A stretch of 64,000 bases of DNA from Hamiltosporidium tvaerminnensis FI-OER-3-3 (taxonomy: Eukaryota; Fungi; Microsporidia). Below are positions 8,682 through 52,172 of the stretch, piece by piece. The notes under the pieces are model-generated. The model was not told where the DNA came from. It worked only from the letters and a program-made list of their open reading frames with translations, and did no database searches. How positions within the stretch are numbered: position 1 is the first letter of the stretch; each line of letters begins with the position of its first letter. The stretch covers positions 372,001 to 436,000 of the forward strand of contig CM061256.1 in assembly GCA_022605425.2 (NCBI GenBank), read 5' to 3'. The position numbers and the translations under genes are program-made.

Positions 8682-10082
8682 TATATGCCTATTTCTTATA
8701 TTGAAATAAACAAATATTGAATTGTGTTAAATTAAATATAAACTCAACATTAGTATAATTTTTTAATGTTAATTTTGTTGTAACCTATTTATTTACTTAT
8801 TATTCTTCATTCATATCTTTTTATGAACTATATATATTTACAGGATTTTTTTATAAACAATACAATTATGCTTTACTTACAATTATATTTTATATTAACA
8901 ATTTGTGATTTTGATCAATAAAACTCACACTTTCATTGTATAGAGCGATCTGATGTGAGTCAGAAGCAAATTTTTATTTTCAAGCTGACATTCTTTATCT
9001 AATGAGACTTACATGAAAAAATTTTCCTTAATGGACTTTATGTCATGTTTTCATTCGAGATATTTTAGATGGTCTTCTATTATGATACAATTTTAACATC
9101 ACCTATTTTGATTTGACCTAATCTTTTTTTTGCATCTCAAATCTCATTCGAGTATTTCATTTCTTCGCGCAAATTTTTATTTTCAGTTTTATATTTTACT
9201 ACAAAGATAAACAAGAATAGTGAGTGGCATCTTCTGATAAGTCAACAATTTGACTTCTCAGTCACGCGAAGATTGTACTCTTTAACTTTTTGGGCAAAAA
9301 TGATACCCGCTATTTCTTGTAGAGACAATATATTTACTAAAAGTTATGTCCCAATGTTTTTATAATTTTTATTTAAGGCCAGATTTCCTTAAGGTCATTA
9401 CCTTTTCGTATTTTTTCATGCTACGAAGGAAGAGTTATAAAAATCGTTTTCTTTACGACTTATTTCTTTTTAAACCACCGTTATAGCCATATATGACTTA
9501 ATTTTTTAACAGTTTATTGTGTTATAATCTTATTTTGCAAAATTATACTCATAAAAATGATTTTTCTGTATTTTACTAAAACATTTCGTTTTTATTTATT
9601 AGATAACCCCATTTAATCGAATGAAGAACGATTACCTAAACACCAAAACTAACTTTTCATTTATAAGCCAAAAATTTAACGTAAAACATTTCAAATGCTT
9701 AGAAACATTATTACTTTGATTTAGATGAAAAATCAAGATAAAAAAAGAAGCAGTTATAATGATAAAAGTATTATTATAAGTAAAGCATTTTTATTTATTT
9801 CTTCTCTTAAATATCTTTTACTAAAATTAAGGCCAAAAAACAGATGATTTTATTGAAATAAATAACCTAAAACAAATGAAAGATTCAATAAGTTAAAAAA
9901 TAACTCTTTTTCAGTAGATATTATTGTATTTAGAATCGTCTCGTATTTTATTATGTTCCTCTCTTCTTTCTCCCGCCGCTGAATTTTTAATTCTGAGAAA
10001 AAGTAAATCTTGACAGCAATATCCATAATTGCAGATTATAAGAGGTTTTAAAATTTATTTTATTTCTTTTGTAAGAAATTAA

Positions 10083-10810
10083 ATATTTAAACTTTATTCA
10101 AAAGTATCACATCTTTTTAAAACAGTGGCAAGTGTTATATTTGTTTTTATGACATTAACGAAGTTTTAGGTTTAACATGAATAACTGCTACCCCGCACTC
10201 CATCGGTAACCTCTGCGATACCTATGTCCCAAAGCCTTTCATCTAACCGGTGTGTAGAACCTAATTAATAAGCGAGGCAGTTGTCCGGAGTTGTTAATGT
10301 CGGTTGCATGGAGTGCGATCGAAAACCGAAGCCCCCTGCTCCTCCAAGACTATGCAGCGTTCCCACTTACTCTACACTTTCTGAACCCAATAAACTTCTA
10401 GCTAAGATATATTTCAGAGATTTACATGGGATCCACCTAGACAGTGCAATGCCATACCAACAGGTATAACCTGCTACTTAGCTCTCTTGGCTATAATGGT
10501 TTTATTTTTATTCTCCTAGGCGCTAAGTCTTCTAACCCGAGTGAGCAAGGCTAGGTTTCTATGCTTTTACATGGCAATTACCTACAAGTTTAGCCGCGGT
10601 CTGCAATCTGTTGACGTAAAAAACTACAAATAAATCGTAGAAAAAGTTTCTCCATTTCTTAGACTTCTCCTCCTCATCACAACTCCCATGAACAACCAAA
10701 GATGTAGTGTGGTTTTATTCCCACCAAAAATTCAAACAATGATTTTCAGAGCAGTTTCACACACTCATTGCCAAGCAGAAAGTTTTTTATGTGGTTATCC
10801 TCCCTCCACC
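10083..10810 (-). mobile_element. ~730-bp SINE-like element, copy 1
   Basis: Homologous to 51421-52148. Flanked by direct repeat TTTTGTAAGAAATTAA (10067-10082 and 10811-10826). Confidence 0.85.
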
Positions 10811-10831
10811 TTTTGTAAGAAATTAATCTTA

Positions 10832-12581
10832 CTCCCTCTGTCCGGAAATATGGTATACATTTTAGCGATTTTTTTGTCCGGAAATATGGTATACATTTGC
10901 GAAAAAAATAAAATAAAATAAAAAATGTAAGGACAAGTTTATTATATTACCTTTATTTCGAACATTAAATAAATATTAATGTAAATATTAAATAAAGATT
11001 TAAAATCATATATATTAAAATTAATAATTCACTCAAAATTTGATTTGGCTTTAACGTATTCTTCTTTGGAACATACATATTTTTCTAGCAGTCGACCTTC
11101 GCGACGAAGTTTTACTTTACTTAAATGAGGTATTTTATAACCATTTCCACCATCTGCTAGCATAATTGACTCCATACATGCTTGCAATGTTGTAAAAACG
11201 TTATCGAGAGTATTCGCTTCTAATTGATGAAATGCATCTTGAACAAGATTTATTAATTCGTCAATTGTGTGTGGCGATGCTTGATATTGCAGCGATTGTA
11301 TGGAGTTGAAAAAGCCTAAACCAAGAACATTTAAATTCGGGCTATTTGCCAGTTGCACCTTAAATTTAATATTCCAGTCATCAGCAGAACCAAGAGCGAC
11401 AATATCTGCATCATTATCCGAAAAATGGGGTTTCGCATTGTCTTGTTGTACGTAAATTGTTTTCTTTTTGTATGCTTGCGGAAATTTAGATTTAATTACG
11501 GAAATACACTATCAATGATCATGTTTTTGCAACGACTGCTGTAACAGATTCCACATTTTTTTTTATCATTGTTCTTTAGCCCTATTCTTAGAATTTTTTT
11601 GAGCTGGTTCTTGATAAACAAATAGCCATATTCCAATTTTCCCATCAAAAAAAAGCTTTCGATGTGCATCATAGCGTGGTCGAGCTACTGCAGCCATGAA
11701 CATTATTTTCGTAATAAATGGCTTACTTTTGCAGTTTCTCTCCGGTTTTTCTTCGTTTAACATTAAGTAATAAGAGCGCTTAACTTTAGTTAGATAAAAC
11801 CACTTTTCATCAATGTGAACGTAGTCGTACAAATCATCAAAAAGCAAATCTCCATTATTAGCAAGATTTACTTTAGACAAGCAAAATTTCAATCTGTCCA
11901 TTTTATTTTTATCTGTTAAAGTTGGATAACTGAAGAAGATATTTTCTTCATATACTTTCCCGACTTGAATATATCAAACAAAGTTTATTTTGGAATATCA
12001 ATTGCAAAGGAAAGACTTGTGAGCGTTCATCGACGATTTAATGGTGTTTTCTTAATTGCGCTAAATTGTTCGAATATTCTTTAGGTTTTCTTCCGCATCT
12101 TTTTTTCTTTTTTGAAGAAACATCGGCACATATCTTGCCTTTTTTGTATTGAGTTTGTGCTGTGTGCCAAATTCTGTTAACGGTTAGCCGGGAAACTTGA
12201 AAGACAGAAGAAATTTCGTTGATGGCACCGTATTTTAACTTATTCTCCTTCATCTGCTGTAATAATTTTTTAAAATACCTTGACGTTGTTCTTTAGTTAA
12301 CTGTTTATATTTTGAATCTCTTCTTTCTAAATTTAACAAATTTCCTTCCAAATTTTCCATATTCGTTTTGCAGCGGTACTAATTTTTTTTACCTTAAGAA
12401 ACACTGATGTTTCAGCGGTAACTTTTTAACTAAGAATGATATTACTAAAGTTAAATATTTTAGGTTGTATTGTCATGAATATTTACTATGACAATGTCAT
12501 GACAGTTGCATTTTTATTTTTATATTCACGATAATCTATAGTTTTTTTCGAAATTTATACCATATTTCCGGACAGAGGGAG
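10832..12581 (-). mobile_element. Tc1/mariner DD39D (plant-type MLE) transposon with inactivated transposase
   Basis: 31-bp TIRs CTCCCTCTGTCCGGAAATATGGTATA(C/A)ATTT and TA duplications at 10830-31 and 12582-83. Transposase motifs HIDEKWF, QQDNAKPH and NSPNLNVLGLGFF, with 39 residues between the second D and the third-D position (now G). Frameshifted; start near 12360. Confidence 0.93.
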
Positions 12582-13540
12582 TATTTAATAAAAAATCGAA
12601 AAATTAGAAATATTACCAAACATGAAGTAGAAAACAAAGTTCAATGATTTCCTCTGTTCTATTATTCACATACTTTCTTTATATTAATCAACTTTTTCTT
12701 AACTTTTGTTGCTGTTTTACTCTTTTTCTATACTTAAATTCTAAAAAAAAAAAAAATTACAAAAAAAATAAAATATAAGCTAAGTATCATAATTAACTTT
12801 ATAAAGAATAAAAGGTCTTTAACCACATGATTTATTTCAGTTTTAAGTTATAGTACGTTTTTCTTTTGTTTTATGAAGTTTTAACACGAGACATAATAAA
12901 AATAGTAAATAAGTCTAGGCTCTTAACGGGCCATAATGCTATTGAGTAGGTAAATAAGTTGGTAAGTAAGATATAATAAAAAAAGAGAGTAACATATTAA
13001 GGTTTAGACCGAATAGAATAACAAAAAATTTATGTAATTTTTAAGTGAAAAACTATGGCAGGAACAAAAGTATAAAAAATACCTCAAAAATAATATTATA
13101 AACAGTATTGAATTACAAATAAAATGTAATTTACAAGCCTGAATCAGCGATATATTTGAGAGCTTATAAAGAAGAAGAAGCTAATTTAAATAATAAAACG
13201 ATAAATAACTTGAGAACAAAAGATTTTACAGCCTTTAATATGATAAATTCATAGTCTATTAAGCTTCTAATAATATTTTTAACAATTTATCTTAAAATAG
13301 CTATTATTCTGTAGTTTTATATACTAAGTTGTTAAATATTAAATAGTCGTGGTTTTTATTTATTCTAAATACCAATATGCTTCTCTTATTTAATTATTAT
13401 AATATTTTAGATTTACTAGTTTTTCAAGGTGGTATAAGTTACACAGTATTTTAAATCCTTTTTTCAACCAAGATTTAAAATTTTCCGAGAAATACAATAT
13501 TTTATTATAAACGACCACCCCCCTTCGCTATTAATTTTAA

Positions 13541-15713: not shown

Positions 15714-16516
15714 CACTTTATTTAAAAATATCACATCTTTTTACAATAGTGGCAAGTGTTATATTTGTTTTCATGACATTAACGCAGTTCTAGGTTTAAC
15801 ATAAATGACTGCTACCCCAACACTCCATCGGTAACCCCTGCTATACCTACGTCCCAAAGCCTTTCATCTACCAGGTGTGTAGAACCTAATTAATAGGCGA
15901 GGCAGTTGCCCGGAGTTCGTTAATGTCCGTTGCATGGAGTGTGATCGAAGGCCGAAGCCCCCCCTGGGCTCCCCCAAGACTATGCAGCATTCCCACTTAC
16001 TCTACACTTTCTGAACCCAATAAACTTCTAGCTAAGATATATTTCAGAGATTTACATGGGATCCACCTAGACAGTGCAATGTCATACCAACAGGTATAAC
16101 CTGCTACTTAGCTCTCCCGGCTTTTAATGGGTTTTATTTTTATATCTCCCAGGCGCTAAGTCTTCTAACCCGAGTGAGCAAGGCTAGGTTTCCATGCTTT
16201 TACGTGGCAATTACCTACATGTTCAGCTGCGGTCTGCAATCTGGTTACATAAAAAACTACAAATAAATTCGTAGAAAAAGTTTCACCATTTCTTAGACCT
16301 CTCCTCCTCATAACAACTCCCATGGAACAACCGAAGATGTAGTGTGGTTGTATTCCCACCAAAAATCCAAACAATGATCTCACACCAGTTTCACACACTC
16401 ATTGCCATGCAGAAAGTTTTTTATGTGGTTATCCTCCCTTCACCTATTATGTGGTTATTCTCCCTCCACCTATGTGGTTATCCTCCCTCCACCTATGTGG
16501 TTATCCTCCCTCCACC
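15714..16516 (-). mobile_element. SINE-like element, copy 2, with 4x terminal 23-mer
   Basis: Near-identical to 51421-52148. TSD TTAATATTTTAATAAT at 15698-15713 and 16517-16532. TATGTGGTTATCCTCCCTCCACC x4 at 16422-16516. Confidence 0.9.
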
Positions 16517-16532
16517 TTAATATTTTAATAAT

Positions 16533-16680: not shown

Positions 16681-16841
16681 TATTCCATATTCTTATTAAT
16701 ATCTTAATTATTCATCACCCCATCCAATTCCCTTCTTCTATTCCCCTCCTTCAAATAAAATCGTCAAATAAAATCTCCAAAAAACAATCTCTTAAATCTT
16801 ATAATCTACATTTAAATTCTCTACACCCCACACCCCTAAAC

Positions 16842-20511: not shown

Positions 20512-21274
20512 TTATTTAATAAAATTCAGAGTTAAAATATTTTTTAACATTTTTATATGTTTTCTTTCTACCTCTTTAACCACTACTGTCTCTTCTTCCA
20601 AATCCGACTCTTCATTTATGTTATTGGTCGGTTCCTCCAAAGTGGTTCCTCATTGATAAATAAAGGGTGTATTATTTTGGTTTAAATTTTAACACCATCT
20701 TCCTCTCTCTTCGCTTCTTTTAAAGGGGGTGTTGGTTCTTTATGGATCTCTGATCTCATAATAACACCCATTGACGCTCTCTCCCAGCTCTCTTCGGCAT
20801 TTAGTCCTGACTCAAGTCCTTTTCGTCGATCAAAGGAAATTGTTTCGACTGTCTTCTTAAGTACTATAGACTGAATGTATGCTTCTACATTCATGGGTAT
20901 TTCTAGTCTTTTAAGATGAGATTTATGGTATTTTGTCACAATACCGTCCCAGGTCATCACATAAGGGATTATCTCAACACCACACCTATAAATAAGATCC
21001 AACTCATTGGCTAGCAGGTCATACTTCCTAAGTTTTTCAGTTTCAACTATTTGAAGTAAATCTTGGGAAGTGATTCCAACTTCAATTAGTGTTATCTTAT
21101 TCTTCTTCTTATCTAAAATAAATGTGTCGGGTCTGTCATTCCGAATTTTAACATCAGATTTAATTCTGGTGTCCACTCTTATCTCTGCATACTCATTATC
21201 AAGAATTTCTTGAACTGAGTGACTCCTAATTCGTTTTGAGGACTTAAACTTATATCTATTTAGGAGAAGTAAGT
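20512..21274 (-). mobile_element. 5'-truncated R4-clade LINE copy (RLE domain and 3' end)
   Basis: RPDTFILD..IEVGIT..EKLRKY restriction-like endonuclease motif. Highly similar to 55192-55955, including the terminal AATTTTATTAAATAA. Confidence 0.92.
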
Positions 21275-21807
21275 TTAATTTAAATATAAGAAAAATAATT
21301 TAGTTCAAAGCTTTTAATTACTTCTTTTAAAGAAGGGGTTATTTTTAAATTATTTTTAAAGAAATTAGAGAATAAATAAGAGAATAAATTTATGGTTTAA
21401 AGCTTATTCTCTACCTTTTTTTTAAAAAAAGGTTATTTTTAAAGAAAGTAGAGAATAAATTCAAGAAAAAAAATAAAAAATTAGAGAATGAATTAAAAGA
21501 AATATAAATACTTAAATATTTTATTCAATAAAATTCTAGGTTTACAAAATTTTCTCTTTCTAAATAATAATTTCCACTATTTCAACTACTTCTATCTCTT
21601 CCTCCAACTCCAACTCTACATTTGTTAAATGCTTAAAATAAATAAATAAAAAAAAAACTTAAAATAAAAGATGATTAAATAAATAGTGAGAAAAAATACT
21701 TAAATAAATAAATACATTACAAATATAAAATACAAACCTAAAATAAATAATACAAAACATAAAATTTTAAATTAAGAAGTTGAAAATATTGTTTATTGGA
21801 ATCTGTT

Positions 21808-22317
21808 TTAATTCTTTCTGGCATATTTTTCAACGCATTCTTTACACTTCTGTCTGTAAAGTTCTCTATCATTAACGTATGTACGAGCTATTTCTGGGAC
21901 AAGTGGGTCTTTTGGGTTTGGTTCGTCTAACCAACTAATTAGTGAAATAATGACTTTCTGTATAGTTAGTGCTGGTGACCAGCTATCGTTAAGTATGTCG
22001 AGGCATATGACACCGTTGGAGTTGATATTTGGGTGGTAAATTTTAGTGAGGAAAATAATTTTTGGTGGTTTGAATGGATAATCTGCTGGAAAGGTAATTC
22101 TTAGGTTGAAGATACCGCCGTGGTAGAAACTACCTTCCGGTGGAATGAGTTTGGCATCCCATTCAAAGAAATTGCCATTTCCTGATGGTTGTATCTCAAA
22201 ACACCTAAATGTTGTGTCTTTAGCCATGTTCTTTGGATCTGATTTCTCTTTGGAAAGTGCTTGCATTTCTTTCATTATTCTTTTTTTTGCAGCGTTGTCT
22301 GCTGATGTTTTGTCCAT
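21808..22317 (-). CDS. UBC4: Ubiquitin-conjugating enzyme E2 (Ubc4/UBE2D-like)
   Basis: KRIMKE, FPADYPFKPPK, YHPNINSNGVICLDIL (catalytic Cys), WSPALT, PNPKDPLVPEIA; ACCC before ATG. Exact subfamily less certain than the E2 call. Confidence 0.9.
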   Translation of the reverse strand: MDKTSADNAAKKRIMKEMQALSKEKSDPKNMAKDTTFRCFEIQPSGNGNFFEWDAKLIPPEGSFYHGGIFNLRITFPADYPFKPPKIIFLTKIYHPNINSNGVICLDILNDSWSPALTIQKVIISLISWLDEPNPKDPLVPEIARTYVNDRELYRQKCKECVEKYARKN

Positions 22318-22490
22318 GGGTATTTGTTTTTTTTTGTTTTTTTATTATTTGTGTCTGCGATATAATTTATTTTTAAATTTGAAAATGTTGTTTTTTTGTA
22401 GGATTTAAAATATTATTATTTGTGTTTTTTGTACTTCTTTGCAGTTTTTTGTCTTTTATATTTTATTATAATTTTTATAATTTTACTGTA

Positions 22491-22589
22491 AAGAGTCGGA
22501 TTTGGAAGAAGAGACAGAAGTGGTTAAGGAGGTAGAAGAAAACATATAAAAAATGGTAAAAATATTTTAACCCAGAATTTTATTAAATA
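22491..22589 (+). mobile_element. ~100-bp extreme 3' fragment of the R4 LINE with 14-bp TSD
   Basis: AAGAGTCGGATTTGGAAGAAGAGACAG...AATTTTATTAAATA matches 55857-55954. ATAATTTTACTGTA repeated at 22477-22490 and 22590-22603. Confidence 0.88.
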
Positions 22590-22845
22590 ATAATTTTACT
22601 GTATTTTTTATAATTTTACTTCTATTTAATATTTTGTATAATTTTTTATAATTTTTTATAATTTTAGTACTTTTTTGTTTTTTTGAATAGAACTTAGAAA
22701 TGCTTTAATTTAAATTATTTTAGAAAAATATGTTTAAAATGGAAGTTTTTTATGGGTTTTTGTTAAAATAAGAAAGATAATTTGATTGTTTTTAAGGTTG
22801 ACGGCTGTATATTAAAAAAAATATTTAAAATATAGGCGAATTATT

Positions 22846-23045
22846 ATAGGGATTTAAATAAAAGGGATTTAAATAAAGGGATTTCAAATAAAGGGAGTAA
22901 AATAAAGGGATTTAAATAAAGGGATTTCAAATAAAGGGAGTAAAATAAAAGGAAAGAATTATAGGCATTGAATTAAAGGGATTAAAATAAAAGGAAAGAA
23001 TTATAGGCATTGAATTACAGGGATTAAATTACAGGGATTAAAAGG
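22846..23045. repeat. Degenerate AAAGGGATTTAAAT-type tandem array upstream of the E2 gene
   Basis: ~14-bp units with GGG cores, plus a larger duplicated unit (AAAATAAAAGGAAAGAATTATAGGCATTGAATT x2). Confidence 0.8.
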
Positions 23046-26150: not shown

Positions 26151-26570
26151 AAAATAATTACACAATTAAATTAGCTTATATCTACAAAATGTAGTTAATG
26201 ATAGGTTCGAATGGTAAAAAGACCTACAATTTCGTGAAATTTTTGGTGATAAAATACACTACAACAATCTCATCAATTACAAATTAATCCAGAGTTTTAT
26301 ATTATTTTATTTGGGTTTTTTAGCAGCAGAAGCCGTATTTGTAAAATCCCTTCCCTCATTCTGTTCCACGCTGAATTTTACCCCTGGCTGAAAATAAAAT
26401 CCAGCGGATCGTGGCACCTGATAAATTGTATTGGGTCTGAAAAATTTTGTATTTAATTCTTTTCTTTAGACAAAAACATTTATTTTGATGGGAAATTTTA
26501 CATTTTGTGAATACGAAAAGATTTTAATAAAATAAGACCCTTTTAAGTGGAAAAAATATTTAGAAATTGA

Positions 26571-32570: not shown

Positions 32571-32700
32571 TTGCCTATTTGTTTATGGCTTTAAATAGAT
32601 TTCTGCCCTTAATTTCTTGGGATAAAGTCTGATGAATTTGTTTAAAAACTTATTTTTCTTATTTTTCAGAAAATAAATAACAAAAAAATTTTTATAACCC

Positions 32701-37539: not shown

Positions 37540-38237
37540 TTTATTTCATATGATATTTATCCGTAAAGAGTGGAATCTTTTACATTGTTTTTATGATATT
37601 AACGCATTTCGAGATTATGGTTAGATAACTACTTCCCCGGTGTTCCATCAGAAACCCATATGAATCCTAAATCTTATATACGGATATCTAAAGGGATTAG
37701 AGAACCAGTTTAATAGGCGAGGCAGTTGCCACAAATTTGTTGATATATACCTCGGTATGTAATCATTTTTAAATCGACTTAGGATGTCCTAGAACTAGCA
37801 GTGTTTCCATTACACTGCGCTTCCTGAGCCGATTACCTTCGATTATTATAAATCTCGGCGACTTTAATTGGGTTAAACTAGATATCGCAATGTCATACCG
37901 ACAGGCATTACCTTTGTTTAGTATTCCTGGTTTTTTTGTTGTTTTGTATCTACTAGGCGCCAAGCCTTTTAACACGGGCGAGTAAGGCTAGGATTACATG
38001 CTCCAAATGTAAATTTTCTACAATTTAGCTGTTTTTTCAGATCTGGTTGCATAATTTGTTTCTTTTATATATAATTTCACGGATTTATAAATCTTCATTT
38101 CCTATACAAATTGCCAGTGAGTATCCGAAAAGTTGGTTTGATTTTTGACTAATGGAAATTTAAACAAAGATATTTACATCAATTTCACATATTTATTACC
38201 AAAAGAATGGGTTTTTATCTAGATATGTTTCCAGCCA
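37540..38237 (-). mobile_element. SINE-like element, copy 4 (old, degenerate)
   Basis: Retains TAATAGGCGAGGCAGTTGCC, GCAATGTCATACC, CTAGGCGCCAAG and AAGGCTAGG in the same order and spacing. Ends approximate. Confidence 0.7.
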
Positions 38238-38819
38238 TCATTTATAGTATAGATTTACGATAGATATATAGTGTTCCGTTTTCTAGAATTAAGTGTGCCG
38301 AAATCTGGCAATATAACAGTTCAATTATCTTCAAAGAAAATTGTTGAGGTGAATTTGTTTCCTTGTAAAGATCAATCTCAGAAAGGCTCTATCTCTTCAT
38401 ATTAGAAATTATCACAAACTAATAACTTTGTTTCTATTTTTATAAATTTTTAGGTTTTAATATAATTTACGGATGTAATCGAACATTAAAAATTGTTTAT
38501 CATACATGAAACCCATTTTAGAAGGTTCGAATTAAATATATATTTACAAATCCTAAAATTTTCTTTTAATACAACAAAAATCTTCAATTTCACAGAACTC
38601 ATGGTTTAAAATTTATGTTAACTCACTTTATCGATTAATTCTGAGTTAGAAGTATAACTTTTTTAATTATAAAAACATAACTGATAAGCTTTAATATATC
38701 ACGTTTTGAAGATTTTTTATATGGTATTCCAGTTTTTTTTCTTATATTATAAAATTGCAAATGATATCGTAATCTAAATCGACATAGATTTTTATTTTTA
38801 CAATGAGTTATGAAGCTAG

Positions 38820-39268
38820 TATGTTTTCCCGAAAGGCAGCCAAGTTTGAAGTAAGTCTCTAGCAAGGAGATCGCCTTTCTACTCATCGTTCGTTTATTAT
38901 AATAAAATTGGATATTTCTAGAAATAAGAGAAATGTTTTTATATATTTAATCCATTCCGGTACCTCCTCTTTTTGTTAAAACCTATATATTTTTTATAAA
39001 TTACTAAACTTAAAATATAAAAAAAATTTCAAGATTTTGTGTATAAATAATACCACAAGTGCATTACAATCTAATGGTTTATTTGTTTTCTTTATTATTT
39101 TCTATGGTTTTGTCGTAAGTCTCTGGAAGGCAGCTAAGTTTGAAGTACGTCTCTAACAAGGAGATCGTCTTTTTGCTCCCCGTTCTTTTGTTATTATGAA
39201 AATAATTATTTTTAGAAATAAAAGAATTGTCTTTATTGGTTTTATTCATCTTGGCACACCCTTTTCTA
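38820..39268. repeat. Diverged direct duplication of a ~150-bp unit (offset ~294 bp) with a GC-richer core
   Basis: AAGGCAGCYAAGTTTGAAGTAMGTCTCTARCAAGGAGATCGYCTTT at 38833 and 39127. Confidence 0.8.
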
Positions 39269-39290
39269 AGTTTAAAATATAAAATATAAA

Positions 39291-40013
39291 ACTTTATTTA
39301 AAAATATCACATCTTTTTTAAAATAGTGGCAAGTGTTATATTTGTTTTCATGACATTAACACAGTTCTAGGTTTAACATAAATAACTGCTACCCCAAAAC
39401 TCCATCAGTAACCCCTGCGATACCTACGTCCCAAAGCCTTTCATCTACCAGGTGTGTAGAACCTAATTACTAGGCGAGGCAGTTGCCCGGAGTTCGTTAA
39501 TGTCCGTTGCATGGAGTGTGATCGAAGGCTCCCCGGGCTTCCCCAAGACTATGCAGCATTCCCACTTACTCTACACTTTCGGAACCCAATAAACTTCTAG
39601 CTAAGATATATTTCAGAGACTTACATGGGGTCCACCTAGACAGTGCAATGTCATACCAACAGGTATAACCTGCTACTTAGCTCTCCCGGCTTTAAATGGT
39701 TTTTTGTTTTATATCTCCCAGGCGCTAAGTCTTCTAACCCGAGTGAGCAAGGCTATGTTTCCATGCTTTTACATGGCAATTACCTACATGTTCAGCTGCG
39801 GTCTGCAATCTGGTTACATAAAAAACTACAAATAAATTTGTAGAAAAAGTTTCTCCATTTCTTAGACCTCTTCTCCTCATAACAACTCCCATGGAACAAC
39901 CGAAGATGTAGTGTAGTTTTATTCCCACCAAAAATCCAAACAATGACCTCACACCAGTTTCACACACTCATTGCCAATCAGAAAGTTTTTTATGTAGTTA
40001 TCCTCCCTCCACC
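39291..40013 (-). mobile_element. SINE-like element, copy 5
   Basis: Near-identical to copies 2 and 7 except for a small deletion removing the UUCG hairpin (~39530). No clear TSD. Confidence 0.9.
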
Positions 40014-42224
40014 TTATTTGATCAAATATAATATATTTTAAATATTTTAATTAATTTTTAAGATGTAGAATCTAGAATCGATTTCTTCGGTACTATTTTC
40101 TAAATTTACACAATTATTCTCGCATTTCTAATTAAATTATCATTTTTAATATTTTGATGAGCTGAAATACGGTTGCTCTCTTTTTTAGAAAGAAAATTGT
40201 TAGGTAGAATTGTTTTAAATTTTATTTACATTTGATATTTCTATCAAATTGTCTCTTTTGTAGAAGAAAATTTTTTTATGATTTTTAATTTAAAACAATA
40301 TTGCCTTAGTCGTGTTTTTTTCGAGAAAATATTCCGAATATTCTTGCTATAATTTTTAAACTTGTTTTCTAAATCAATAAATCTCCATACTTTAAAAGAT
40401 TATAAAGTGTGTAATAAAAAAACTTCTGATTTCTTTAGATGTAGCTAAGAAAGTTGCTGGAATGTCATTAAGAAATGCATTTTTTTTATAATTAAAAAAA
40501 TTACTTGTATAACAACGAATAAAGCTTAGATAGAACAGAATCCGGAAATAAACTGCTGTATTTTTGCCTTTAAAGACGACCTAAGGTCTTGTTTCTTACA
40601 TTTTTGGAAGAATGTGTTGAATTTCGACTTAAAAAGACAACCTTAAAAATAATTAATGGTAATATGGATATCTAGCCTCAATAATAAACGTATTACTGGT
40701 CAAATATATTATATTAGAGATTTTTATTAGATCAAATTTAAAACGCTTAAATAAAAAATTTATGTGACGAAATAAACAATCAAAAATTACATTCAAAGAT
40801 AAATAAAGGCAAATGCCATTAACCAGCGTTATATTAAGGCTATCTGAAATACGACAGGACATTGAAAATTAGATATGAGATAAAGCAGTATTTTAATATA
40901 TCTAAAACAGAAATGTGTCATACAAATCAGAAAAAACATCTCAATAAAATAATAAATCAAGTAATGTCATAAAATTTTGACATCCAAGTTTGAAAAAAAT
41001 ACATCCATATGTACAGAAGGTGGAACGAAGAGCTCTCTGTGTTTATTTCATTCCAAAAAATGAATAAAATTTAATTTTTGCAAAACGAATAAGTTCACAC
41101 AGTGCCTGGCTTTTCAAAAAAAAGTATGCGGAAAAAACGAAACTAATAAAAAACAGATTTAAAAAGCCAGGATACTAAATCATATATATTTGGATTGTTA
41201 AGTTAATTCTAGAAAGATACCTTTTTGTTATTTTGAATTTTACTAATTTATTTCAAACATTAAAAACAAAGAAATTAAAATTTTTATTTTTCTTCTATAA
41301 ATTTTGAGGTAGAACTCTTGTTTAATCAAATCTCGGGATGATATGATTGCAAAATATTATGAGAAAAAACTTACGAAGTGAAATATTAATAACTATATAG
41401 GCTTGATAGAGTTGATGGTCGCTTAAAATCTTGCATATCATTTCTTCTAATTTAGAACAGCAAATATAAACATATAACTAACTTCTTTGATATTACTAAA
41501 TGTAGATTCGAAGCAGGCAAAAGATAGAAAAACATACTAAGTTTTGCTCTCTCTTTCATAAAATATTTGGCCAAAAAAAGATTCCAAATAATAAATAAAT
41601 ACAGAATCTAAAAATTCCAATGATATATTTAAAGTCAGAAGTTACTAATGAAAAGTCAAGTTTCGTGCCAAATATAGAATAAATTGATATAGTGATTTAT
41701 AAAGCGTATAGAAAAGAGACTAATAAGTATTTTTAGCATTTTAATAATATTGATATAAAATTTCCCCTTGAAAATAAGCTTATTCATAATAGAACATATA
41801 TATACTCTTTTCTTATTTTACAGAAACGGTTATTAAATATGAAAACCAATGTTATAATACTCATTTATAAATTATATTTCTTGAGTTTAAAAGTGATTTA
41901 TTGGAGAGAAAGATTCGATTTAGCATACAAACACCAATGTAAAAGGATTGTTTTATTTGGTTTACAAAACTACTTTTATTATTTAAAATTCTATGTTTTA
42001 TTAGCATTATTTTTTTGCTTTTCATAAATTCTTTAACTACTTCAAATAAGTATTCCCTTGTTAAAAGATTGTATAAAATTAAACTTCGAATTCGCTATTT
42101 AAATTTTTGTATTTAAACATAAATTATTAGATAAAAAACAAAAAAAAATTAATTATAAAATGTTTTTATTATTTTTGATTCTTTTGTAATTTAATTTAAA
42201 AATAAATGACAAAAAATTTATAAT

Positions 42225-43124
42225 TTATTCGTCTAAAAAAGAAACACCGTCATAAATACCATCGACGATGTTGAACGCAAGTATTTCAGATGTTGACATG
42301 TATGTTATATCCCCTCGATTTCGAGCAGCTTGTATTTTTTTTGATGCGTTAACATTCGAACTGTTCAAATCGTGTACAGTAAGAAGCGGCACTGTTGATA
42401 TTTTTTCGTTTGGCCTGCTACTAATTTTTTTTTCTTTATCTGCGATTTCATTATTATTTATTGTGATTTCTTCGATTTTTACAGTTTTCTGTATCTGTTT
42501 TTGATTTTTCAATATCGAGTTGTAATTTTTTTTAGGAATATGATTTTCTTCATTATGAATATGAGAGTTTTCCTTTTCGACACAGGTTTTAGGCTTTAAA
42601 ATGCCCCTAGTCTCAACATCCTGAATTATGCTTGGTCTTTCTAATTCTGCAACCATATCAACAGATTCTAAATTGAGTGGAAATCCAAGATATGTACATA
42701 TGTCTTTAAAACATATATTTCTTTGGATTTGGAATACAAAATTTTCAATAAATATATGTATTTTATATGTTATCATAGCAAATATTTTATAATATCTTTG
42801 CCAAAGCGAATAACTAATGGATCTGTTTCTACATTCGAGACCTCCCAGAACAAAAATAGGCAGCAAATATTTTTTATACAAAAACAGGATGATAACTTTA
42901 ATTATTTCCTTGGTTTGTAATATAAAAAAACAATGTATTCGGACGGCAAATATTATTACTTTTACAACTGGATTTAAAATATAACAGAGAAAAATGTCTA
43001 TAAATTTCATAATTTTCGTAATCAAATTGTATTCAATGCCGATATTTGTCAAGTATAAAATTGATTTTAAAACTTCAGATGGAATAGTAAAAAAAATCAA
43101 GATTATTATATTGTCGATGCGCAT
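42225..43124 (-). CDS. Hypothetical membrane protein, 299 aa (paralogue of 47241-48113)
   Basis: Long ORF, hydrophobic N-terminal half, shared motifs with its paralogue. Confidence 0.75.
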   Translation of the reverse strand: MRIDNIIILIFFTIPSEVLKSILYLTNIGIEYNLITKIMKFIDIFLCYILNPVVKVIIFAVRIHCFFILQTKEIIKVIILFLYKKYLLPIFVLGGLECRNRSISYSLWQRYYKIFAMITYKIHIFIENFVFQIQRNICFKDICTYLGFPLNLESVDMVAELERPSIIQDVETRGILKPKTCVEKENSHIHNEENHIPKKNYNSILKNQKQIQKTVKIEEITINNNEIADKEKKISSRPNEKISTVPLLTVHDLNSSNVNASKKIQAARNRGDITYMSTSEILAFNIVDGIYDGVSFLDE

Positions 43125-43789: not shown

Positions 43790-45130
43790 CAAACTGTAGA
43801 TGTTCAGAAGCGGAATTTAATCATTCGTGTTTTTGTGAAGATGAGATAATTCATTTTCATGATACTTCTTAATTCGATTTTTGCAAATAATTTTCTGCTT
43901 GTCGTCACATTGTATAAAAATTTATCGCTGCTACTTCTAAGAACAACTTTTTAGAATCTATCCTCATATAAGTCAATAATTTTGCTTTTTTTAGTCTTTT
44001 GATTGTTATCGAAATCTCTCTTTAGTAGAACCACATCACCAGGAGTAAATTTTAAGCAAGAGAAGTGTACATACGCATCATTTTTGATCCAGATACATAT
44101 AAGTCTCAATATTTTAGCGAGATCATTCGAATAATATCTATTTTATTATATATTTTATCCTCATATATACTTTATCTTCATAACGAGACTTTTTATGTTT
44201 AGATCTGTATTTTCAAGATATTTCTTCAATTCATAGCTTGAAAAATATTTTTTATGAATTGCATCTTCCTCGTAATAAGATTTTTTGCCTATAAGACCTA
44301 TAAATGACTGCCATTGGGGTCATGTTTATTGCCCTGCTCTAATCTGATTGTAGCTATGTACAAATTTCTTACTTAAATCGATCCATCTTTTTCGGCTAGA
44401 TGTTCTTAAATTTATACAGGTTTGCATATAATTGTCTAGTTGTATTTCTCTTTTTCCCTTGATAATGTATGTACCTTGCACTTCCAGTTATAAATGGAAT
44501 GTTGTGATCAACATATATTTTTTTTGAAAAATTTCTTTTCGTTTTTGTTTGTAGAATATTAGGCGCACTTCTGAAAAAATAAGATTTCTCAGCGTATTTG
44601 CAACACCAGCTCCTGCCTTTTTTTGCAATGGTGCCCCAAATAAAAATTTAGAGTGTGCATCTAAAGTGTGTAAGATCTATCCAACTCCATCATTATCCAT
44701 TGAATATTTACGCATATCAACAAGATCCATATGAATTCTTTCTCATAGATAATTTAGAGGTATCGTTTAAATTGCATCATTTCGCTTCAAAGGTGGATAA
44801 TACTAGCAATCTTGGCATGTTTTAACGAATAGTTCTATTTTATCTCGCTTAAACCAGCAGTATTTTCTTATGATTTCTTGATGCATTCGTTTAATATTAA
44901 TGTAGCCAGGAAAATTTATAGAAGCAAAAAATTGGTTTATGCTTCTTTATCATCATCTGCTATAACTTCTTTAATGAAAGTTAATATCCGTTTTAATTAT
45001 CTTACCATTTTCGATCTATATATCGCCTTCTCGTTTTATAAAGCATCGTTTCTGATTGCAATTCATATTGTACGGTAAATTTCTTGAAAATATGAATTTT
45101 TAAAGCCTTCTAATTTCATATTTGTCGCAA
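43790..45130 (-). mobile_element. Decayed rve-integrase element (Ginger/KRBA2-SCAND3-like)
   Basis: Hand-translated minus-strand CQDC, ERIHMDLVDMRKYSMDNDGVG*ILHTLDAHSKFLFGAPLQKK and PNILQT motifs; many stops; no RT or LTR seen. Ends approximate. Confidence 0.65.
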
Positions 45131-47240
45131 TTCATGTTATTTTTAAAAAATTTTTATCGGTTAAAAATATAATATATTTTTTAAATCCAAAACATGAATA
45201 TGAACGAAAAAATGTAACTCTAATAAGTAGAAAGTTTGCAGGAAAAAATTAATTCAATTAAATTTATTTTTTTTACTTGAAATTTGATTTTGGTATAGAT
45301 AATGATTTTGGAATAACCTCGATATTTATTATTAATATTTATGCTGAAATCTAAAACGTTCATACATATGTTCAATTAAATTATAATGTAATCTTTACAA
45401 CATTTTCAAATAAAAATATCAAAATTAAATACCAAATTTTTATAAGAGTTTTTCAGCCAAGCAACGCCATCACGTTCATAATTTGCTCAAAGGTTTGTTT
45501 CCGCTTTTGGCTTTGCCTACTGCATGAAAAAACAACTTCCAAAATGGAATGCACAAAAAAAACAGATCCAAATTTTACAGATAAGCCACCGAAGAAGTTT
45601 ATGATAAATTTTATTCCTCAATTAGACTTACGTTTTTAAAGAATTATTGATAAGATTATTTGATTAAATCAATCTAATTAATAAGAAATATGATAGAGGT
45701 TTGAAAAAATCTTGAAAATCAAATATCTTTATTGTATTTCAAATTCATAATAAAAATTATTCACGCTGTGAACTTTTTTGTATATTTATTTAAATTTTTT
45801 TATTTTATTTTCCTTTTTAAAACATCTACTGTACAAAAAAATTCATGACGGTTCGATTTGGCTCACAGTCCATAGTTTTGTAATGCCGAATCCAAATCTA
45901 GATCGTAATATACTGAATGTATATATATTATTTAACAAAAAATTTAAATTAGTAAATAATGTTCGAATCAGAACAAATTATTAAAACTTTTAAATTAGTA
46001 AATATTATCAATATTTTATCCAAAATTATGAATTTAGTCTTTTGGGTTATAAATATACTGTCTGAATAGATTATCTAAATATAAATTTAGATATCTTATA
46101 AATTTAGAACGAATATTTTTTTTGTTTTAATTATTCTGGAATCGACCAGACAAATTTATAAGCATAGGGAAAATTAAATAATATTCCTTGTTTTAGTTAT
46201 GAATAATTGTGTTTAACAATCGTTAGCTCGTCATATCTAATATTGAAAGGACGTCTAATTTTTTTTCTATTAAACAATTTCCATAATTCAAGCAAAATGA
46301 AAGAAATCACAGTTTAGACCATCGCATTATAAAAATTTATCTCTTTTAGGAATACATGTCATACATTTATAGTAAGATTTGTATTTCAGAACAAAAAATG
46401 TGTATTAAAATTCAAAATTCAAGGAAATGCTATTATTCTAAATAATTTGAAATAAATTTTGGTTTCAAATTTTATATGTGAAAAATCTAAAAGGTATTTT
46501 TTAGGAAATTTCAATGATAAAGTTTTTTATTTTCCTCCATCAATTGATAATGTGATCGTGATTTGTATTGTTCTAGAATATTGTTCCAAGCAAAATGTTA
46601 TGTAGATTTAAATAATTAAATATCCTAGATAAAAGCCTAATAAGCAAAACCCATTCCTTAATATCCTATCCGAATGCAGCCTTAAACCGCAAAAAAATCA
46701 AAAGCTGTGCTTGAGTAAATAAATGTTTAAAATTTATATTCCTCATATATCATTGCAAAATAAAGTATTAAAATTCAAATTACTATTGTCTAGCTTTATG
46801 AGAACATGTAAACAAAATTTAATGTTCCTTTTTGAAATTTAAAGTCTACGAAAAGATGATTTGACTTTTCAGAGACAAAAATGTTATATGATACATTTTG
46901 GTAATACATAAATAGAATTAATAAAAAAACATAATATTGAGATGATGCAATATGTTGTCACGTGAATTTAAACTATAAATTTTTTATAGATAATTTAAAT
47001 TAATGACGTAAGATCTAGTATGCACCAATTTTAATAAATTTCATTTTTTATGACAAATTTTGTATGGTTTTGATTGAAATTTCATAATTTTTGATTGATT
47101 TATCAGTAAAGTATAAATAATCCTTGATTTTTTTTGTTTAAGTTTATCTATTTGATACATATTTAGAGATAAGACATAATTGTTTCATTGCAATTTGTTT
47201 ATATTTTTGTCTATAAATAAAAAAACACAATAACAAAACA

Positions 47241-48113
47241 ATGAATATTTCTAGCACATGGTTGAGGAAAAACCTGATTTTGCTCATTAGCACAATTATT
47301 CTTGTAGCATTTAAAATGATTGTCTATGTTTTAAAAATGGCTATTGTGTATGGTGTCATATCAAAGGTGATAAAGATAGTCAAATTCATTTTAGAAAAAT
47401 CATGGACGAGAACTATTAAGTCTATATTTTATCTTATTCACTTGTATTATAAAATTACATGTAAACTTGCACAATTTTTAAAAAAAATCATTGTGATGAT
47501 ATATAATTCGTGTTTGCTTCCTATATGTGTATATGGCGGCATAGAATACAAAAGAATACCCACCGGCTATTCAAAATGGCAAAAGAGCTATAGATTATTT
47601 GCTATATCATTGTATGGTATACATATATTTTCTGAAAAGACTATTACTACATTAAGAAAAAATATATGTTTTAAAGATATTGGAGCCTTTTTTGGATTTA
47701 CGGAGATTGGTCACGATAATATGGAAGCTGGAATAAATGAACTGGAGGCACAAGATACCAACAATCAACCGAAAATTATTCTTCCAAACAAAACAGATAA
47801 AAAATCTGCTAAAAATAATACTTCAGCCACAAAAAACAAGATCCAAAGTAAAAAAACTGTTAAAATTAACAAGCCATATGTAATAAATCACAATATCCCA
47901 ACAGACAATGAAATATCATGTAATGGCTTAAAAAGAAAAAATCCAAAAATTGACCCTTATGATACCATCGTAGTAGAAACTTTGGATGAAAGTATACTTA
48001 AAAAGGTGCAGCAATCGCATGATCAAGGTGATATCACATCATTATCTACTTCGGAGATACTTGGATTTCATATTGCTGATGGAATTTATGATGGCATTTC
48101 ATTTTTAGATTAG
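47241..48113 (+). CDS. Hypothetical membrane protein, 290 aa (paralogue of 42225-43124)
   Basis: Shared LLPIxVxGGxE, YSxWQxxY, NICFKDI and terminal GDITxxSTSEILxFxIxDGIYDGxSFLD motifs. Confidence 0.75.
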   Translation: MNISSTWLRKNLILLISTIILVAFKMIVYVLKMAIVYGVISKVIKIVKFILEKSWTRTIKSIFYLIHLYYKITCKLAQFLKKIIVMIYNSCLLPICVYGGIEYKRIPTGYSKWQKSYRLFAISLYGIHIFSEKTITTLRKNICFKDIGAFFGFTEIGHDNMEAGINELEAQDTNNQPKIILPNKTDKKSAKNNTSATKNKIQSKKTVKINKPYVINHNIPTDNEISCNGLKRKNPKIDPYDTIVVETLDESILKKVQQSHDQGDITSLSTSEILGFHIADGIYDGISFLD

Positions 48114-48950
48114 AAAAATTTACAAATAAATTCATAGAATATATCATTTCCAATTTAATTTTAATTATAATTTTAAAGACCTAAAAAACTTTAATTTAAT
48201 ATATCAAATATTTTTATAAATCATATACTTTTTCCTGTGGCATATATAACATTGGGTTTACGCTGCACACAAATGGAATAGTATACATTTTTTTCAAAGA
48301 ATTCAAAACATAATTCGGCCTAAAAAATTTGAATATTTAGAAATTACTGATTAAATAGTATTTTTGAATACGTTAGCCTGAAACACGTAGATCCTGGTAT
48401 TTACGCGTATATTAAAACATTTTTGTACGTCTGGGTTTTTATCAATAAATTTCGACAAAAAATCTTGATTTTCATGGCATTTTTATAGTCGTTGAGCTTC
48501 TCGACTCAACTAATGTTTAATATAGGTTCATTAGAAAATCTTTCGAATTCAGAATAAATAATACAAAGTTTTAGTTAAAAAAATCAAGGCAGTTTATCTA
48601 ATCTTGAAATCTAATTTTTACAATTAACTCATGATAAGCAGCTTTCAAATTTGATGGAATAAGCATATTTTGTTGTGTACAATAACGAAAAATTACATGT
48701 CTATATAAGAAAGAAATATGTAGAAATAAAAATTTACTTTATAAGTAGTTAAATTTAATTGATAATCCGAAAAAAATATGTGGAAATTATTTGTATCAAT
48801 GCTTAAAACAGATTATTTAATCTTTTAAGCAAACAAATTCGATTATTTAATTGTTAAAAACAAATCATGACAGAAGAAAATTTAATAAGGATAAATATAG
48901 CACAAAAAGAGATATGTTAAAACCACTGCCTACCTATATTTTAATTATAA

Positions 48951-49654
48951 ACTCTTTTAAAAAACATCACATCTTCTTAAAGCAGTTGCAAATGTTATAT
49001 TCTTCATGAAATTAACAAAGTTCAAGGTTTAAAATAGATAAATGAATCTCAACACACTGTCAGTGATTTTTCGATACATACATCGCAATGTTTTTATCGA
49101 AAGATTATAAAGCTTTTTTAATGAGTGAAGAAGTTGCTTTAGGTTCTTTAATGATCTTTGCTTAGTGAGTGATTTCGGGTAGAATCCAAGTTTGGGATAA
49201 CAATGTCATCAACATTTCGGCCTACTCTAAGCTTTCGGGCCGAAAGACTTCCGTTAAAACATTTCTCATTGAGCCATACAGAGTCAATCGTGTATTGTAA
49301 TTTAATATCAACAAGCGTAACACGTTAATTTGAATTCCTGGATTTTTAAAAGTAGATTTTCCATATCACACGGGCGCCAAGTCTTCTAATTCGCGTATGC
49401 AAGGTAAATTTTACATACTCTACATAGTATTTTCCACAAGTTCAATCATAAGTTTCGATCTAGTTATATTAAAAAGTAAAATCTAAGCTTTATAAATATT
49501 TCGCTATTTTGAGATATGTGCTTTACACAAATTACCAGGTAACACTAAAAATTAGATGTGGATCTCATTCCAACGAAAATTTAAACAATAATTTTCCCAC
49601 AAATGTCATTAAACCATTACAAAGTAAAAAATTTCAGATGTGTTTTCTTTCCAC
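48951..49654 (-). mobile_element. SINE-like element, copy 6 (old, degenerate)
   Basis: ATCACATCTT..GCAAATGTTATAT start, GGCGCCAAGTCTTCTAA, TATGCAAGG and ATTCCAACGAAAATTTAAACAA in the expected order. Confidence 0.65.
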
Positions 49655-51232
49655 AATAGATTAATATTTCGATATATTAAATCGAATTAAATTAGAATTT
49701 GAACAGAGAGTTTTTTTAGTATTTTTAGAATCCTAGATTTCTTATAACTGATCTCAATTCCTGGTTGTTTATATATTTTGTAATAGGAGAAAAAACCAAC
49801 GTTGCATTCTCTTTGAACTTTTAGATACCTTTTACTTTGGGCTGATTTTTCCAAACAGAGATCGTTTTATATTTTACTTAAGGTGAATTCTGTTTTAATG
49901 AGCATCAACTTATAAAAGTAATTGATATCCACGCAAAAATTTGTTGTGAGTCGTCTTTTGAGAATCTGATCCATGACACGATGAAGATCCGAACAATAGA
50001 TTTATTCTTTCGTAGCCTATTACTCATATTAGCAATTTTCGCGATAGAAAAAATAGATACCATCAATTCCACAGCTTTTCAAAATTGAAGCCAAATAATA
50101 TAATTTTAAAACTCATCAATTATAAGAACATGAAGTGAAATGTATTTTTAACAAAGAATAGTAGATGTTATTTTAATTTGGGCGATTCATTTTTTTTGTT
50201 TCAAATCGTAGAAAAGAACCAACTTTCATAAAAATTTGCTATATTTTGAAATAAAATATCCTAAAATTTTATTATAATTTCGAGCTTAAATAACTCAAAC
50301 ATACAATTACTTCAAAGTAACAACTTTATATTTCCATAAAATCCGATTTTCTGCAACCAAAACATCCATTGACTTATTTTCTTAACTAAAGCATCTGAAA
50401 AATCATTTTTTTTTGGATTTTAAATATTCATCTGTATAATATTCTTAAACATCTTTTTTTTTCGAATATTCCATATTATTTTTGTCTACGAGTTAGTTAT
50501 AGAAATTTTAGGAAAGTATAAAAAATATTTCATTTTCCATGTTTTTCTCTCATCATAAACCTATGTATCTCTTTACCAGTTGCCGGTTTATGACAAATAT
50601 GGTGAGACTTGGATAGTATAAGCACTATTTTAAATCAATCCAGACAATCAAGATTAGTATATTACATAACAAATATTTAACAAAGGGCCATTTGTTTCAC
50701 TTTTTGTATTCAATTTGTTCTAAAGATTTGATATTCAGTTTTAATTTATTTTGAACATAAAAATGATGGGTATAATTTAAATTTCATATAACCATATCAA
50801 TGTCAAAAATTTCAAAGAATATGTTTACTGATATTTATTCTAAATATATTCCTAAATTTGTGATATTTCTACATATAAAGTAACTTTTAAAAAATTCTTT
50901 CAAATTATTATCTTCTTTTTTTAAAAACTAACTGAAGACATTATTTCATTTAATTTTTCTACAATTTTTTTCTGCAGTTTTAAAATATTAAGAACTTCAC
51001 GATAGCATCATTGTATAAAAACAAACATATTTGTTTTTAATTTAAAATTTGAAAAAATGTTCCTCTTAAATTAAAAATTTAATTAAATCTTTTATTATTC
51101 ATTTTAATTTATCAAAAATACTAATTTTCAGACATTTACTTTCTAATTTCAATTTATTTTAAAATTTATATCTTTGAATATTAAATTAAAAATTTTTTGG
51201 GTAGTTCCTATCTAAATTTACTTTTTTCGAAT

Positions 51233-51366
51233 AATTTCCTAATTTATTATTTAATTTATCAAAGTGTTTTACCGCCAAACCGTTTTTAATTTCATTTCCT
51301 AATTTATTATTTAATTTATTAAAGTGATTTTACCGCCAAACCGTTTTGAATTTCATTTCCTAATTT
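51233..51366 (+). repeat. ~61-bp tandem repeat (two and a bit units), possible LINE 5' region
   Basis: ATTTCCTAATTTATTATTTAATTTATYAAAGTG(A)TTTTACCGCCAAACCGTTTT repeated twice. Confidence 0.75.
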
Positions 51367-51420
51367 CCATAATTTTTTAATTTCCTAATATTATAATTTA
51401 CTATTTATTTTTTAATTTAT

Positions 51421-52148
51421 AGGTGGAGGGAGGATAACCACATAAAAAACTTTCTGCTTGGCAATGAGTGTGTGAAACTGGTGTGAGATCATTGTTTGGA
51501 TTTTTGGTGGGAATAAAACCACACTACATCTTCGGTTGTTCCATGGGAGTTTGTATGAGGAGGAGAGGTCTAAGAAATGGTGAAACCTTTTCTACGAATT
51601 TATTTGTAGTTTTTTATGTAACCAGATTGCAGACCGCAGCTGAACATGTAGGTAATCGCCATGTAAAAGCATGGAAACTTAGCCTTGCTCACTCGGGTTA
51701 GAAGACTTAGCGCCTGGGAGATATAAAAATAAAACCAATTAAAAGCCGGGAGAGCTAAGTAGCAGGTTATACCTGTTGGTATGACATTGCACTGTCTAGG
51801 TGGACCCCATGTAAGTCTCTGAAATATATCTTAGCTAGAAGTTTATTTGGTTCAGAAAGTGTAGAGTAAGTGGGAATGCTGCATAGTCTTGGGGGAGCCC
51901 AGGGGGGCTTCGGCCTTCGATCACACTCCATGCAACGGACATTAACGAACTCCGGGCAACTGCCTCGCCTATTAATTAGGTTCTACACACCTGGTAGATG
52001 AAAGGCTTTGGGACGTAGGTATCGCAGGGGTTACCGATGGAGTGTTGGGGTAGCAGTTATTTATGTTAAACCTAGAACTGCGTTAATGTCATGAAAACAA
52101 ATATAACACTTGCCACTATTGTAAAAAGATGTGATATTTCCAAATAAA
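51421..52148 (+). mobile_element. SINE-like element, copy 7, inserted in the LINE 5' region
   Basis: TSD TATTTTTTAATTTAT at 51406-51420 and 52149-52163; LINE ATG follows at 52173. Confidence 0.88.
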
Positions 52149-52172
52149 TATTTTTTAATTTATGAAAGGAAA

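Follow-up and report, generated by a model that had tools for sequence, protein, structure and literature searches.

A SINE-like, non-coding 730-bp retroposon family and its candidate LINE partner in the microsporidian Hamiltosporidium tvaerminnensis

Hamiltosporidium tvaerminnensis FI-OER-3-3 is a microsporidian parasitic on Daphnia magna, with a 21.6-Mb genome according to the papers on assembly GCA_022605425.2. In this study, we analysed a 64,000-nucleotide stretch of contig CM061256.1 (hereafter the window, at about 372-436 kb of the record; record coordinate = window position + 372,000), in which a non-coding unit of 730 bp is repeated in the vicinity of a long interspersed nuclear element (LINE). 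The GC content is about 25% for the window and 42% for the element. Using blastn with positions 51421-52148 as query, together with a profile derived from an alignment of five copies, we found eight copies in the window, five of them full-length (86-98% identity to copy G, the reference for all identities given here), two decayed, and one decayed and partial:

10083-10811 (minus strand): copy A, full-length, 92.6% identical to copy G, found by both blastn and profile
15714-16445 (minus strand): copy B, full-length, 97.7% identical to copy G; the unit ends at 16445 and the insertion continues to 16516
26571-27293 (minus strand): copy C, full-length class with the first ~5 nt missing, 85.7% identical to copy G
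37565-38236 (minus strand): copy D, decayed, 66.8% identical to copy G, GC 34%
39291-40014 (minus strand): copy E, full-length, 96% identical to copy G, with no clean duplication remaining
48952-49652 (minus strand): copy F, decayed, 64% identical to copy G, GC 31%
51421-52148 (plus strand): copy G, full-length, 728 bp; the start codon of a LINE open reading frame (ORF) lies 24 bp downstream
56349-56742, approximately (plus strand): copy H, decayed and partial, with head positions 21-96 at 56364-56438 and body positions 200-462 at 56485-56742

All seven copies listed in a preliminary description of this DNA were recovered by these searches, and an eighth, copy H, had been missed. The same description called the copies colinear, which is loose: relative to the copy at 51421, six of the seven are in minus orientation.

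The unit starts with (A)GGTGGAGGGAGGATAACCAC and finishes with TTTTTAAATAAA plus 0-10 further nucleotides, as described earlier and as is evident in the alignment of copies; discrete units share the fixed 5' start (A)GGTGGAGG. GT follows the TTTTTAAATAAA end in four of the five full-length copies. In copies A, E, and F the continuation is approximately GTTTAWATAT, and the 3' end is thus uneven over some 10 nt; in copy A it lies 10 nt beyond AAATAAA, GTTTAAATAT. Perfect direct duplications of the target site enclose four insertions at the following positions, which bears out the earlier report of 15-16-bp AT-rich duplications around three window copies and adds one from another chromosome:

10068-10082 and 10812-10826: target-site duplication of copy A, 15 bp, perfect, TTAATTTCTTACAAA
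15698-15713 and 16517-16532: target-site duplication of copy B, 16 bp, perfect (17 bp counting the first G of the unit), ATTATTAAAATATTAA
51406-51420 and 52149-52163: target-site duplication of copy G, 15 bp, perfect, TATTTTTTAATTTAT
Flanks of the copy L010:6363-6990, on another chromosome: target-site duplication, 16 bp, perfect, flush with the unit

When the flanks were shuffled, 0 of 300 shuffles produced a match of equal length to the observed duplications. The insertions sit in AT-rich DNA, and older copies no longer show duplications. The duplications of copy G (51406-51420) and of the L010 copy (near 6991-7008) begin with the identical 8-mer TATTTTTT, preceded by TATT in each case.

The insertion of copy B includes three additional tandem repeats of its first 23 nt, GGTGGAGGGAGGATAACCACATA, at 16448-16516. 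Two of these extra units are perfect and one has a G-to-A change, and all lie inside the target-site duplication; they could have arisen by template jumping at the 5' end of the RNA or could represent a multiplied 5' promoter unit. For the 1138-aa gene adjoining copy B, a homology search gave low-complexity candidates and no match, and seven alternative starts were also unmatched.

The 730-bp unit contains neither terminal inverted repeats nor long terminal repeats (LTRs). ARAGORN found no tRNA in it, and Rfam gave no family for the window at the gathering threshold, nor for the unit at E<=10. The longest ORF common to the copies encodes 77 aa from a GTG start and is broken in older copies by 1-nt indels; it has no homologue among 5.8 billion proteins, and exact look-ups of the ORFs of the element were also empty. 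Single-base indels distinguish the copies from one another. The terminal repeats, conserved ORF, and tRNA head that the preliminary description had reported as absent are thus absent in these searches as well. Duplications of variable length, fixed ends, no inverted or long terminal repeats, and no coding capacity point to the broad class of non-autonomous non-LTR retroposons.

Several more specific identities were considered and rejected. A miniature inverted-repeat transposable element (MITE) or other DNA transposon is contradicted by the lack of terminal inverted repeats and by duplications of 15-16 bp and variable length. A solo LTR would have TG...CA ends with duplications of 4-6 bp, whereas this unit has AGGTGG...AAATAAA ends and 15-16-bp duplications. 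A Helitron is contradicted by the presence of duplications and by ends that differ from TC...CTRR with a 3' hairpin. A canonical RNA polymerase III (pol III) short interspersed nuclear element (SINE) does not fit, as there is no tRNA, 7SL, or 5S head by ARAGORN or Rfam (E<=10) and there are internal T5-T6 runs. An internally deleted LINE derivative was discarded because the unit has no LINE match by blastn or profile and the LINE itself begins with its ORF. A hepatitis delta virus-like ribozyme at the 5' end of the unit was also rejected, with no P1 helix partner on inspection and no Rfam match.

To look beyond the window we sampled 63 kb from three other chromosomes of the same assembly, fetched around relatives of the LINE ORF1, so that about 127 kb of DNA was examined in all, with a bias towards LINE regions. 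The profile found four further near-full-length copies in this sample and an internally deleted 304-bp mini-copy (L008:442-745), and copies occur roughly once every 10 kb in this LINE-biased material. The identity matrix of the copies is star-like: each old copy is nearest to copies G and B, and the distance between two old copies is approximately the product of their distances to copy G. GC content declines with divergence, from 42% in copies G and B to 31% in copy F. Private changes number only four or five each in copies G, B, and E, and many other differences are common to several copies, which indicates that the source lineage itself has slowly changed. Each copy has decayed on its own, and all derive from one source sequence that changed slowly. 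The star pattern and GC decay, together with the 15-16-bp duplications and the lack of inverted or long terminal repeats, agree with the long-lived non-autonomous family proposed at the outset.

Comparison with other isolates gives these insertions a relative age. Contig PITI01000164 of Hamiltosporidium magnivora BE-OM-2 (contig accessions in PMC6944219) is colinear with window positions 21243-39524 at 98.2% and has copies C and D and the covered part of copy E, of which the 3' part is at the orthologous place (L002:1-232). The orthologous pair of copy C in the two species is 99.4% identical, and copy F is also found on contigs of H. magnivora IL-BN-2 and H. tvaerminnensis IL-G-3. As copies C, D, E, and F are shared between species, their insertions are older than the split of H. 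tvaerminnensis and H. magnivora. In addition, window positions 1-7566 and 29606-37151 form an inverted segmental duplication (95.1% identity), and a decayed copy matching copy D occurs at L001:245-904, in the mirrored stretch that precedes the window. Since this L001 stretch continues the inverted duplication, copy D is probably older than the duplication as well. The duplicated segment contains genes for deoxyhypusine hydroxylase and a PSD13-like proteasome subunit, together with a diverged LINE fragment and an element of a second family described below.

At the young end of the range stands copy G. Contig PITK01001095 of the Israeli isolate IL-G-3 (L012) matches window positions 43831-51421 at 99.57%, the match ending just before copy G. 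Past the match there are a single TATTTTTTAATTTAT, AAAAA, and a LINE ORF start, with no 730-bp unit (L012:7580-8362 versus window 51406-52921). The left side of this contig matches what is expected for the site of copy G without the insertion; its right side does not, and an empty site is possible. For this contig, an allelic, a paralogous, and a recombinant origin are each possible. Another IL-G-3 contig (L007) has the 3' end of the window LINE unchanged. Contigs of other assemblies that approach copy G from the right end inside the LINE, and on the left an H. magnivora contig (L011) ends 300 bp short. Insertions of the family thus range from before the species split to possibly after the divergence of isolates.

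The head of the unit recurs in a second, shorter non-coding family, which has the first ~110 nt in common with the 730-bp unit and then an unrelated, shorter body. The body of at least one copy finishes with a TAAATAAA-like, A/T-rich tail. The presence of the ~110-nt head in two families suggests that the head is a functional 5' part. Copies of the second family are as follows:

35003-35330 (plus strand): copy in the window, with a duplicate at ~1820-2149 (minus strand) in the inverted segmental duplication
L010:14640-14900 (minus strand), L010:3347-3590 (plus strand), and L009:20096-20436 (plus strand): copies elsewhere, with another at L009:8924-9083

The following LINE sequences lie in the window:

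52173-55957 (plus strand): candidate partner LINE, degenerate, with several frameshifts and stops; its tail is ...TTTTAACCTAGAATTTTATTAAATAAA
22491-22589 (plus strand): fragment of a LINE tail, 5'-truncated; a 14-bp duplication, ATAATTTTACTGTA, lies flush with it at 22477-22490 and 22590-22603
20512-21270 (minus strand): 5'-truncated LINE fragment, 92% identical to the main copy

The 14-bp duplication noted earlier for a LINE fragment belongs to the fragment at 22491-22589, and the earlier statement that most LINE copies are 5'-truncated holds for all window copies except 52173-55957. A near-intact relative at L008:10001-13765 is 92% identical to the latter and consists of one reading frame of 1,254 codons, interrupted in frame by a single stop (11234-11236). 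The sole significant Pfam match of this relative is RVT_1 (E = 4e-25), on an 830-aa piece that also matches the reverse transcriptase (RT) domains of L1 ORF2 and R2 in PDB; the 411-aa N-terminal piece has none. The C-terminus (L008:12770-13765) contains CQHCGKSRKTVDHLATRC and then RPDIF...IEVGITS...EKLRKY, which by its motifs is a predicted CCHC knuckle followed by a PD-(D/E)XK-type (RPD...E...K) restriction-like endonuclease. No apurinic/apyrimidinic endonuclease match was found in the LINE pieces searched, and a PDB search with the endonuclease ORF alone gave no informative match. A single ORF, an RT, a CCHC motif, and the endonuclease motif are the features of the restriction-like-endonuclease group (R2/R4/NeSL/CRE). 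The relatives of ORF1 are 96 proteins, every one from Hamiltosporidium; the RT and endonuclease part has thousands of relatives, the nearest named one being a 'LINE-1 reverse transcriptase like protein' of the microsporidian Dictyocoela muelleri (35% identity). The ORFs scanned in the window, L008, and L010 showed no other RT.

The features that connect the 730-bp unit with this LINE are of several kinds. The duplications are of like length (14 bp for the LINE fragment versus 15-16 bp for the unit) and both lie in AT-rich targets, and the two elements are interleaved in three of the four regions examined. Their ends are similar (TTTTTAAATAAA in the unit versus TTTTATTAAATAAA in the LINE, with the common motif TAAATAA(A)), and a TAAATAAA-type end is common to both. 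The 9-mer AACCTAGAA is confined to the tails of the two elements within the window (6 matches versus 0.78 expected), ATGAAAACA[T/A]ATATAA is common to both tails in 15 of 16 nt (best local alignment, p = 0.027), and 8-mers present in both tails number 6 versus 1.2 expected (p = 0.033). In the partnership suggested by the preliminary description, duplication size, end motif, and endonuclease type stand, whereas the tail similarity is marginal (p about 0.03-0.05). On balance, we incline slightly towards this LINE as the partner of the 730-bp family.

Taken as a whole, the 730-bp unit is probably a non-coding, non-autonomous non-LTR retroposon of Hamiltosporidium that borrows the machinery of a LINE with a restriction-like endonuclease. 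It is SINE-like in behaviour and not a SINE in the strict, pol III sense. The anatomy of the copies supports well target-primed reverse transcription in trans as the likely mechanism, and we infer the driver LINE, the polymerase, and present-day activity. In this scheme, an RNA, probably from RNA polymerase II, would begin at the GGTGG end and stop at or just past an AAUAAA signal. Target-primed reverse transcription at a staggered break in the chromosome would then turn it into DNA, with the break and the RT supplied by the single-ORF RT/CCHC/restriction-like-endonuclease LINE of the same regions. Priming may occur within the UAAAUAAA tail and not on a poly(A) tail, which would explain why poly(A) is absent and why the 3' ends are ragged. 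A resemblance between the target and the tail of the element, TATTTTTAAATAAA, hints at base pairing between the two. The ~110-nt head most likely keeps source copies transcribed or packaged. T5 and T6 runs occur inside the sense strand of the unit, and they argue against full-length transcription by pol III.

A number of observations weigh against this interpretation. The strand, polymerase, and ends of the putative RNA are deduced from the truncation of copies at the 5' end, their ragged 3' ends, and the presence of an AATAAA motif. Folding of the unit gave no signal relative to shuffles on either strand (z = -0.7 and -1.5), the head and the tail folded separately gave none above shuffles either, and no compensatory changes or covariation were found in head hairpins. 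With regard to the LINE, profile search found no homology to the unit outside the tails; the three short tail blocks have a joint p of about 0.03-0.05 against AT-rich genomic windows, and their order is not conserved. A 3' tail of tens of bases in common with the LINE is not present, the shared blocks being 8-16 nt. A clean duplication is available for one LINE copy only, which bears on any comparison of target preference between the two elements, and the LINE survey covers the window and the sampled loci of a 21.6-Mb genome, in which other LINE types may occur. Finally, the right flank in L012 differs from the window in that the LINE there is of another subfamily (75.6% over 505 bp), and the spacer on the side of the unit is AAAAA (5 nt) in L012 versus GAAAGGAAA (9 nt) in the window.

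A more far-reaching version of this interpretation, which we consider speculative and on the whole unlikely, is that of a modular LINE-dependent retroposon superfamily, the first in Microsporidia. Two or more families with differing bodies would have the 110-nt head as a portable internal promoter or ribonucleoprotein-assembly module, the 23-nt 5' unit could multiply (copy B being the example), and the system would be still active, with copy G polymorphic between Finnish and Israeli isolates. The elements and the LINE would both be leaderless, with AT-rich, tail-like targets serving for integration and as upstream promoter.

Among the alternatives, the copies might be processed pseudogenes of a cellular structural or regulatory RNA gene of ~730 nt, whose function would hold the master constant; we judge this improbable. 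The idea would suit a source that is GC-rich (42%) and nearly constant while its copies drift towards the 25% GC of the genome, and it would also suit a head of 110 nt conserved in a second family and the lack of a pol III SINE head. However, there is no Rfam family at E<=10 and no fold signal above shuffles, and about one copy per 10 kb in 127 kb, successive source variants, and a deletion derivative are typical of a selfish family. The two origins, cellular RNA and selfish family, are not exclusive and can both hold.

Mobilisation of the retroposon by another reverse-transcribing element, be it a LINE of another clade or an LTR element, instead of the restriction-like-endonuclease LINE seen here, is likewise rather improbable. 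It draws some strength from the marginal similarity of the two tails, from the ~127 kb of genome examined, and from the several LINE and many LTR families of microsporidian genomes (PMC4202319, table 1). Nevertheless, the LINE seen here is abundant (96 ORF1 relatives), has duplications of like length and a TAAATAA(A) end, and is interleaved with the unit in three of four regions, and an LTR element would not yield 15-bp duplications without LTRs.

That the unit is part of something larger (a LINE 5' untranslated region, a solo LTR, a Helitron end, or a MITE) is very improbable in general and already refuted for the copies in hand: the LINE ORF does follow copy G directly and with the same orientation, and in L008 a second copy lies 55 bp from the LINE 5' end, but the latter is oppositely oriented, the duplications enclose the 730-bp unit alone and are long and of variable length, and there are no terminal inverted repeats or LTR ends. 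The 5' untranslated region in particular was ruled out by four LINE copies (window 52173, L008:10001, L009:10001, and L010:10001), in which homology begins exactly at the ORF start, ATGGGTAGAAGG; their upstream flanks are unrelated, with nothing in common before the start codon and no common 5' untranslated region.

The retroposon interpretation has precedents in other eukaryotes. The EhLINEs of Entamoeba histolytica carry a restriction-like endonuclease. EhSINE1/2/3, which are paired with them, are the closest described analogue of the 730-bp family, as they are non-coding, 500-600 bp long, without a convincing tRNA head, found in the AT-rich genome of a parasite, and flanked by target-site duplications (PMC2996970). 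Short internal or terminal tandem repeats of variable number occur in both, of 26-27 nt in EhSINE1 and as the 23-nt 5' unit in copy B here. On the other hand, ~70 bp of the 3' end of EhSINE1 is common with EhLINE1 (PMC2996970), in contrast to the 8-16-nt blocks here. Moreover, transcription and polyadenylation are documented for EhSINE1, whereas the RNA of the 730-bp family is putative. There is no sequence similarity between the two, and the hosts are unrelated (Amoebozoa versus Microsporidia).

Other LINE-mobilised non-autonomous elements include the R2 SIDEs of Drosophila and RIME/ingi of trypanosomes, derivatives with precise ends that are mostly full-length and keep both ends of the parental LINE. 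The 730-bp unit differs from this type, as it has no detectable homology to the 5' end or body of the LINE. In fungi, Eg-R1 (Blumeria, ~700 bp), MgSINE, and Foxy are long non-coding retroposons with A-rich or poly(A) tails, and Eg-R1 has no tRNA head; their likeness to the 730-bp unit, and their difference from it in sequence, are judged from their descriptions. With canonical pol III SINEs the unit shares a head-body-tail layout, a head module common to families, and a probable dependence on a LINE, and it differs from them in its 730-bp length, its lack of tRNA, 5S, or 7SL similarity, and its internal T5/T6 runs.

The word SINE is absent from the microsporidian genome and transposable-element literature in PMC4202319, PMC7313128, PMC12449221, PMC12558613, and PMC6944219, and full-text searches likewise gave no report of a microsporidian SINE among the papers covered, Dfam and Repbase lying outside this comparison. 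Metagenome and viral scans with invariant 17-21-mers of the unit gave nothing or chance matches. The 730-bp unit is a real family of an ordinary kind that has probably gone undescribed. Hamiltosporidium is a model for the swelling of some microsporidian genomes, and published repeat surveys list LINE, LTR, and DNA elements beside a large 'unknown repeat' class. A defined non-autonomous family at about one copy per 10 kb of the LINE-biased sample would shift part of that class to a known mechanism, and its star phylogeny and GC decay would serve as a clock of repeat expansion. If young copies such as G and B are polymorphic, they would provide presence/absence markers for population studies of Daphnia and its parasite.

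Several further features of the window deserve mention. Just past the 3' end of the LINE, the 227 bp at 55962-56188 are 83% identical to 2168-2390 in reverse orientation, beside the head-sharing element; this stretch is probably another unclassified repeat. Beside copy A, three broken ORFs occupy 11029-12253 (minus strand), of which only the first has a Pfam match, DUF7769 (E = 6e-8). On account of a HIDEKWFYL motif, they resemble the remains of a DNA-transposon gene. The genes at 42225-43124 (minus strand) and 47241-48113 (plus strand), in which no Pfam domain was found, encode hypothetical proteins of multi-copy families; a 1.5-Mb chromosome of this assembly carries several of the paralogues (LUQ84_001244-001258).

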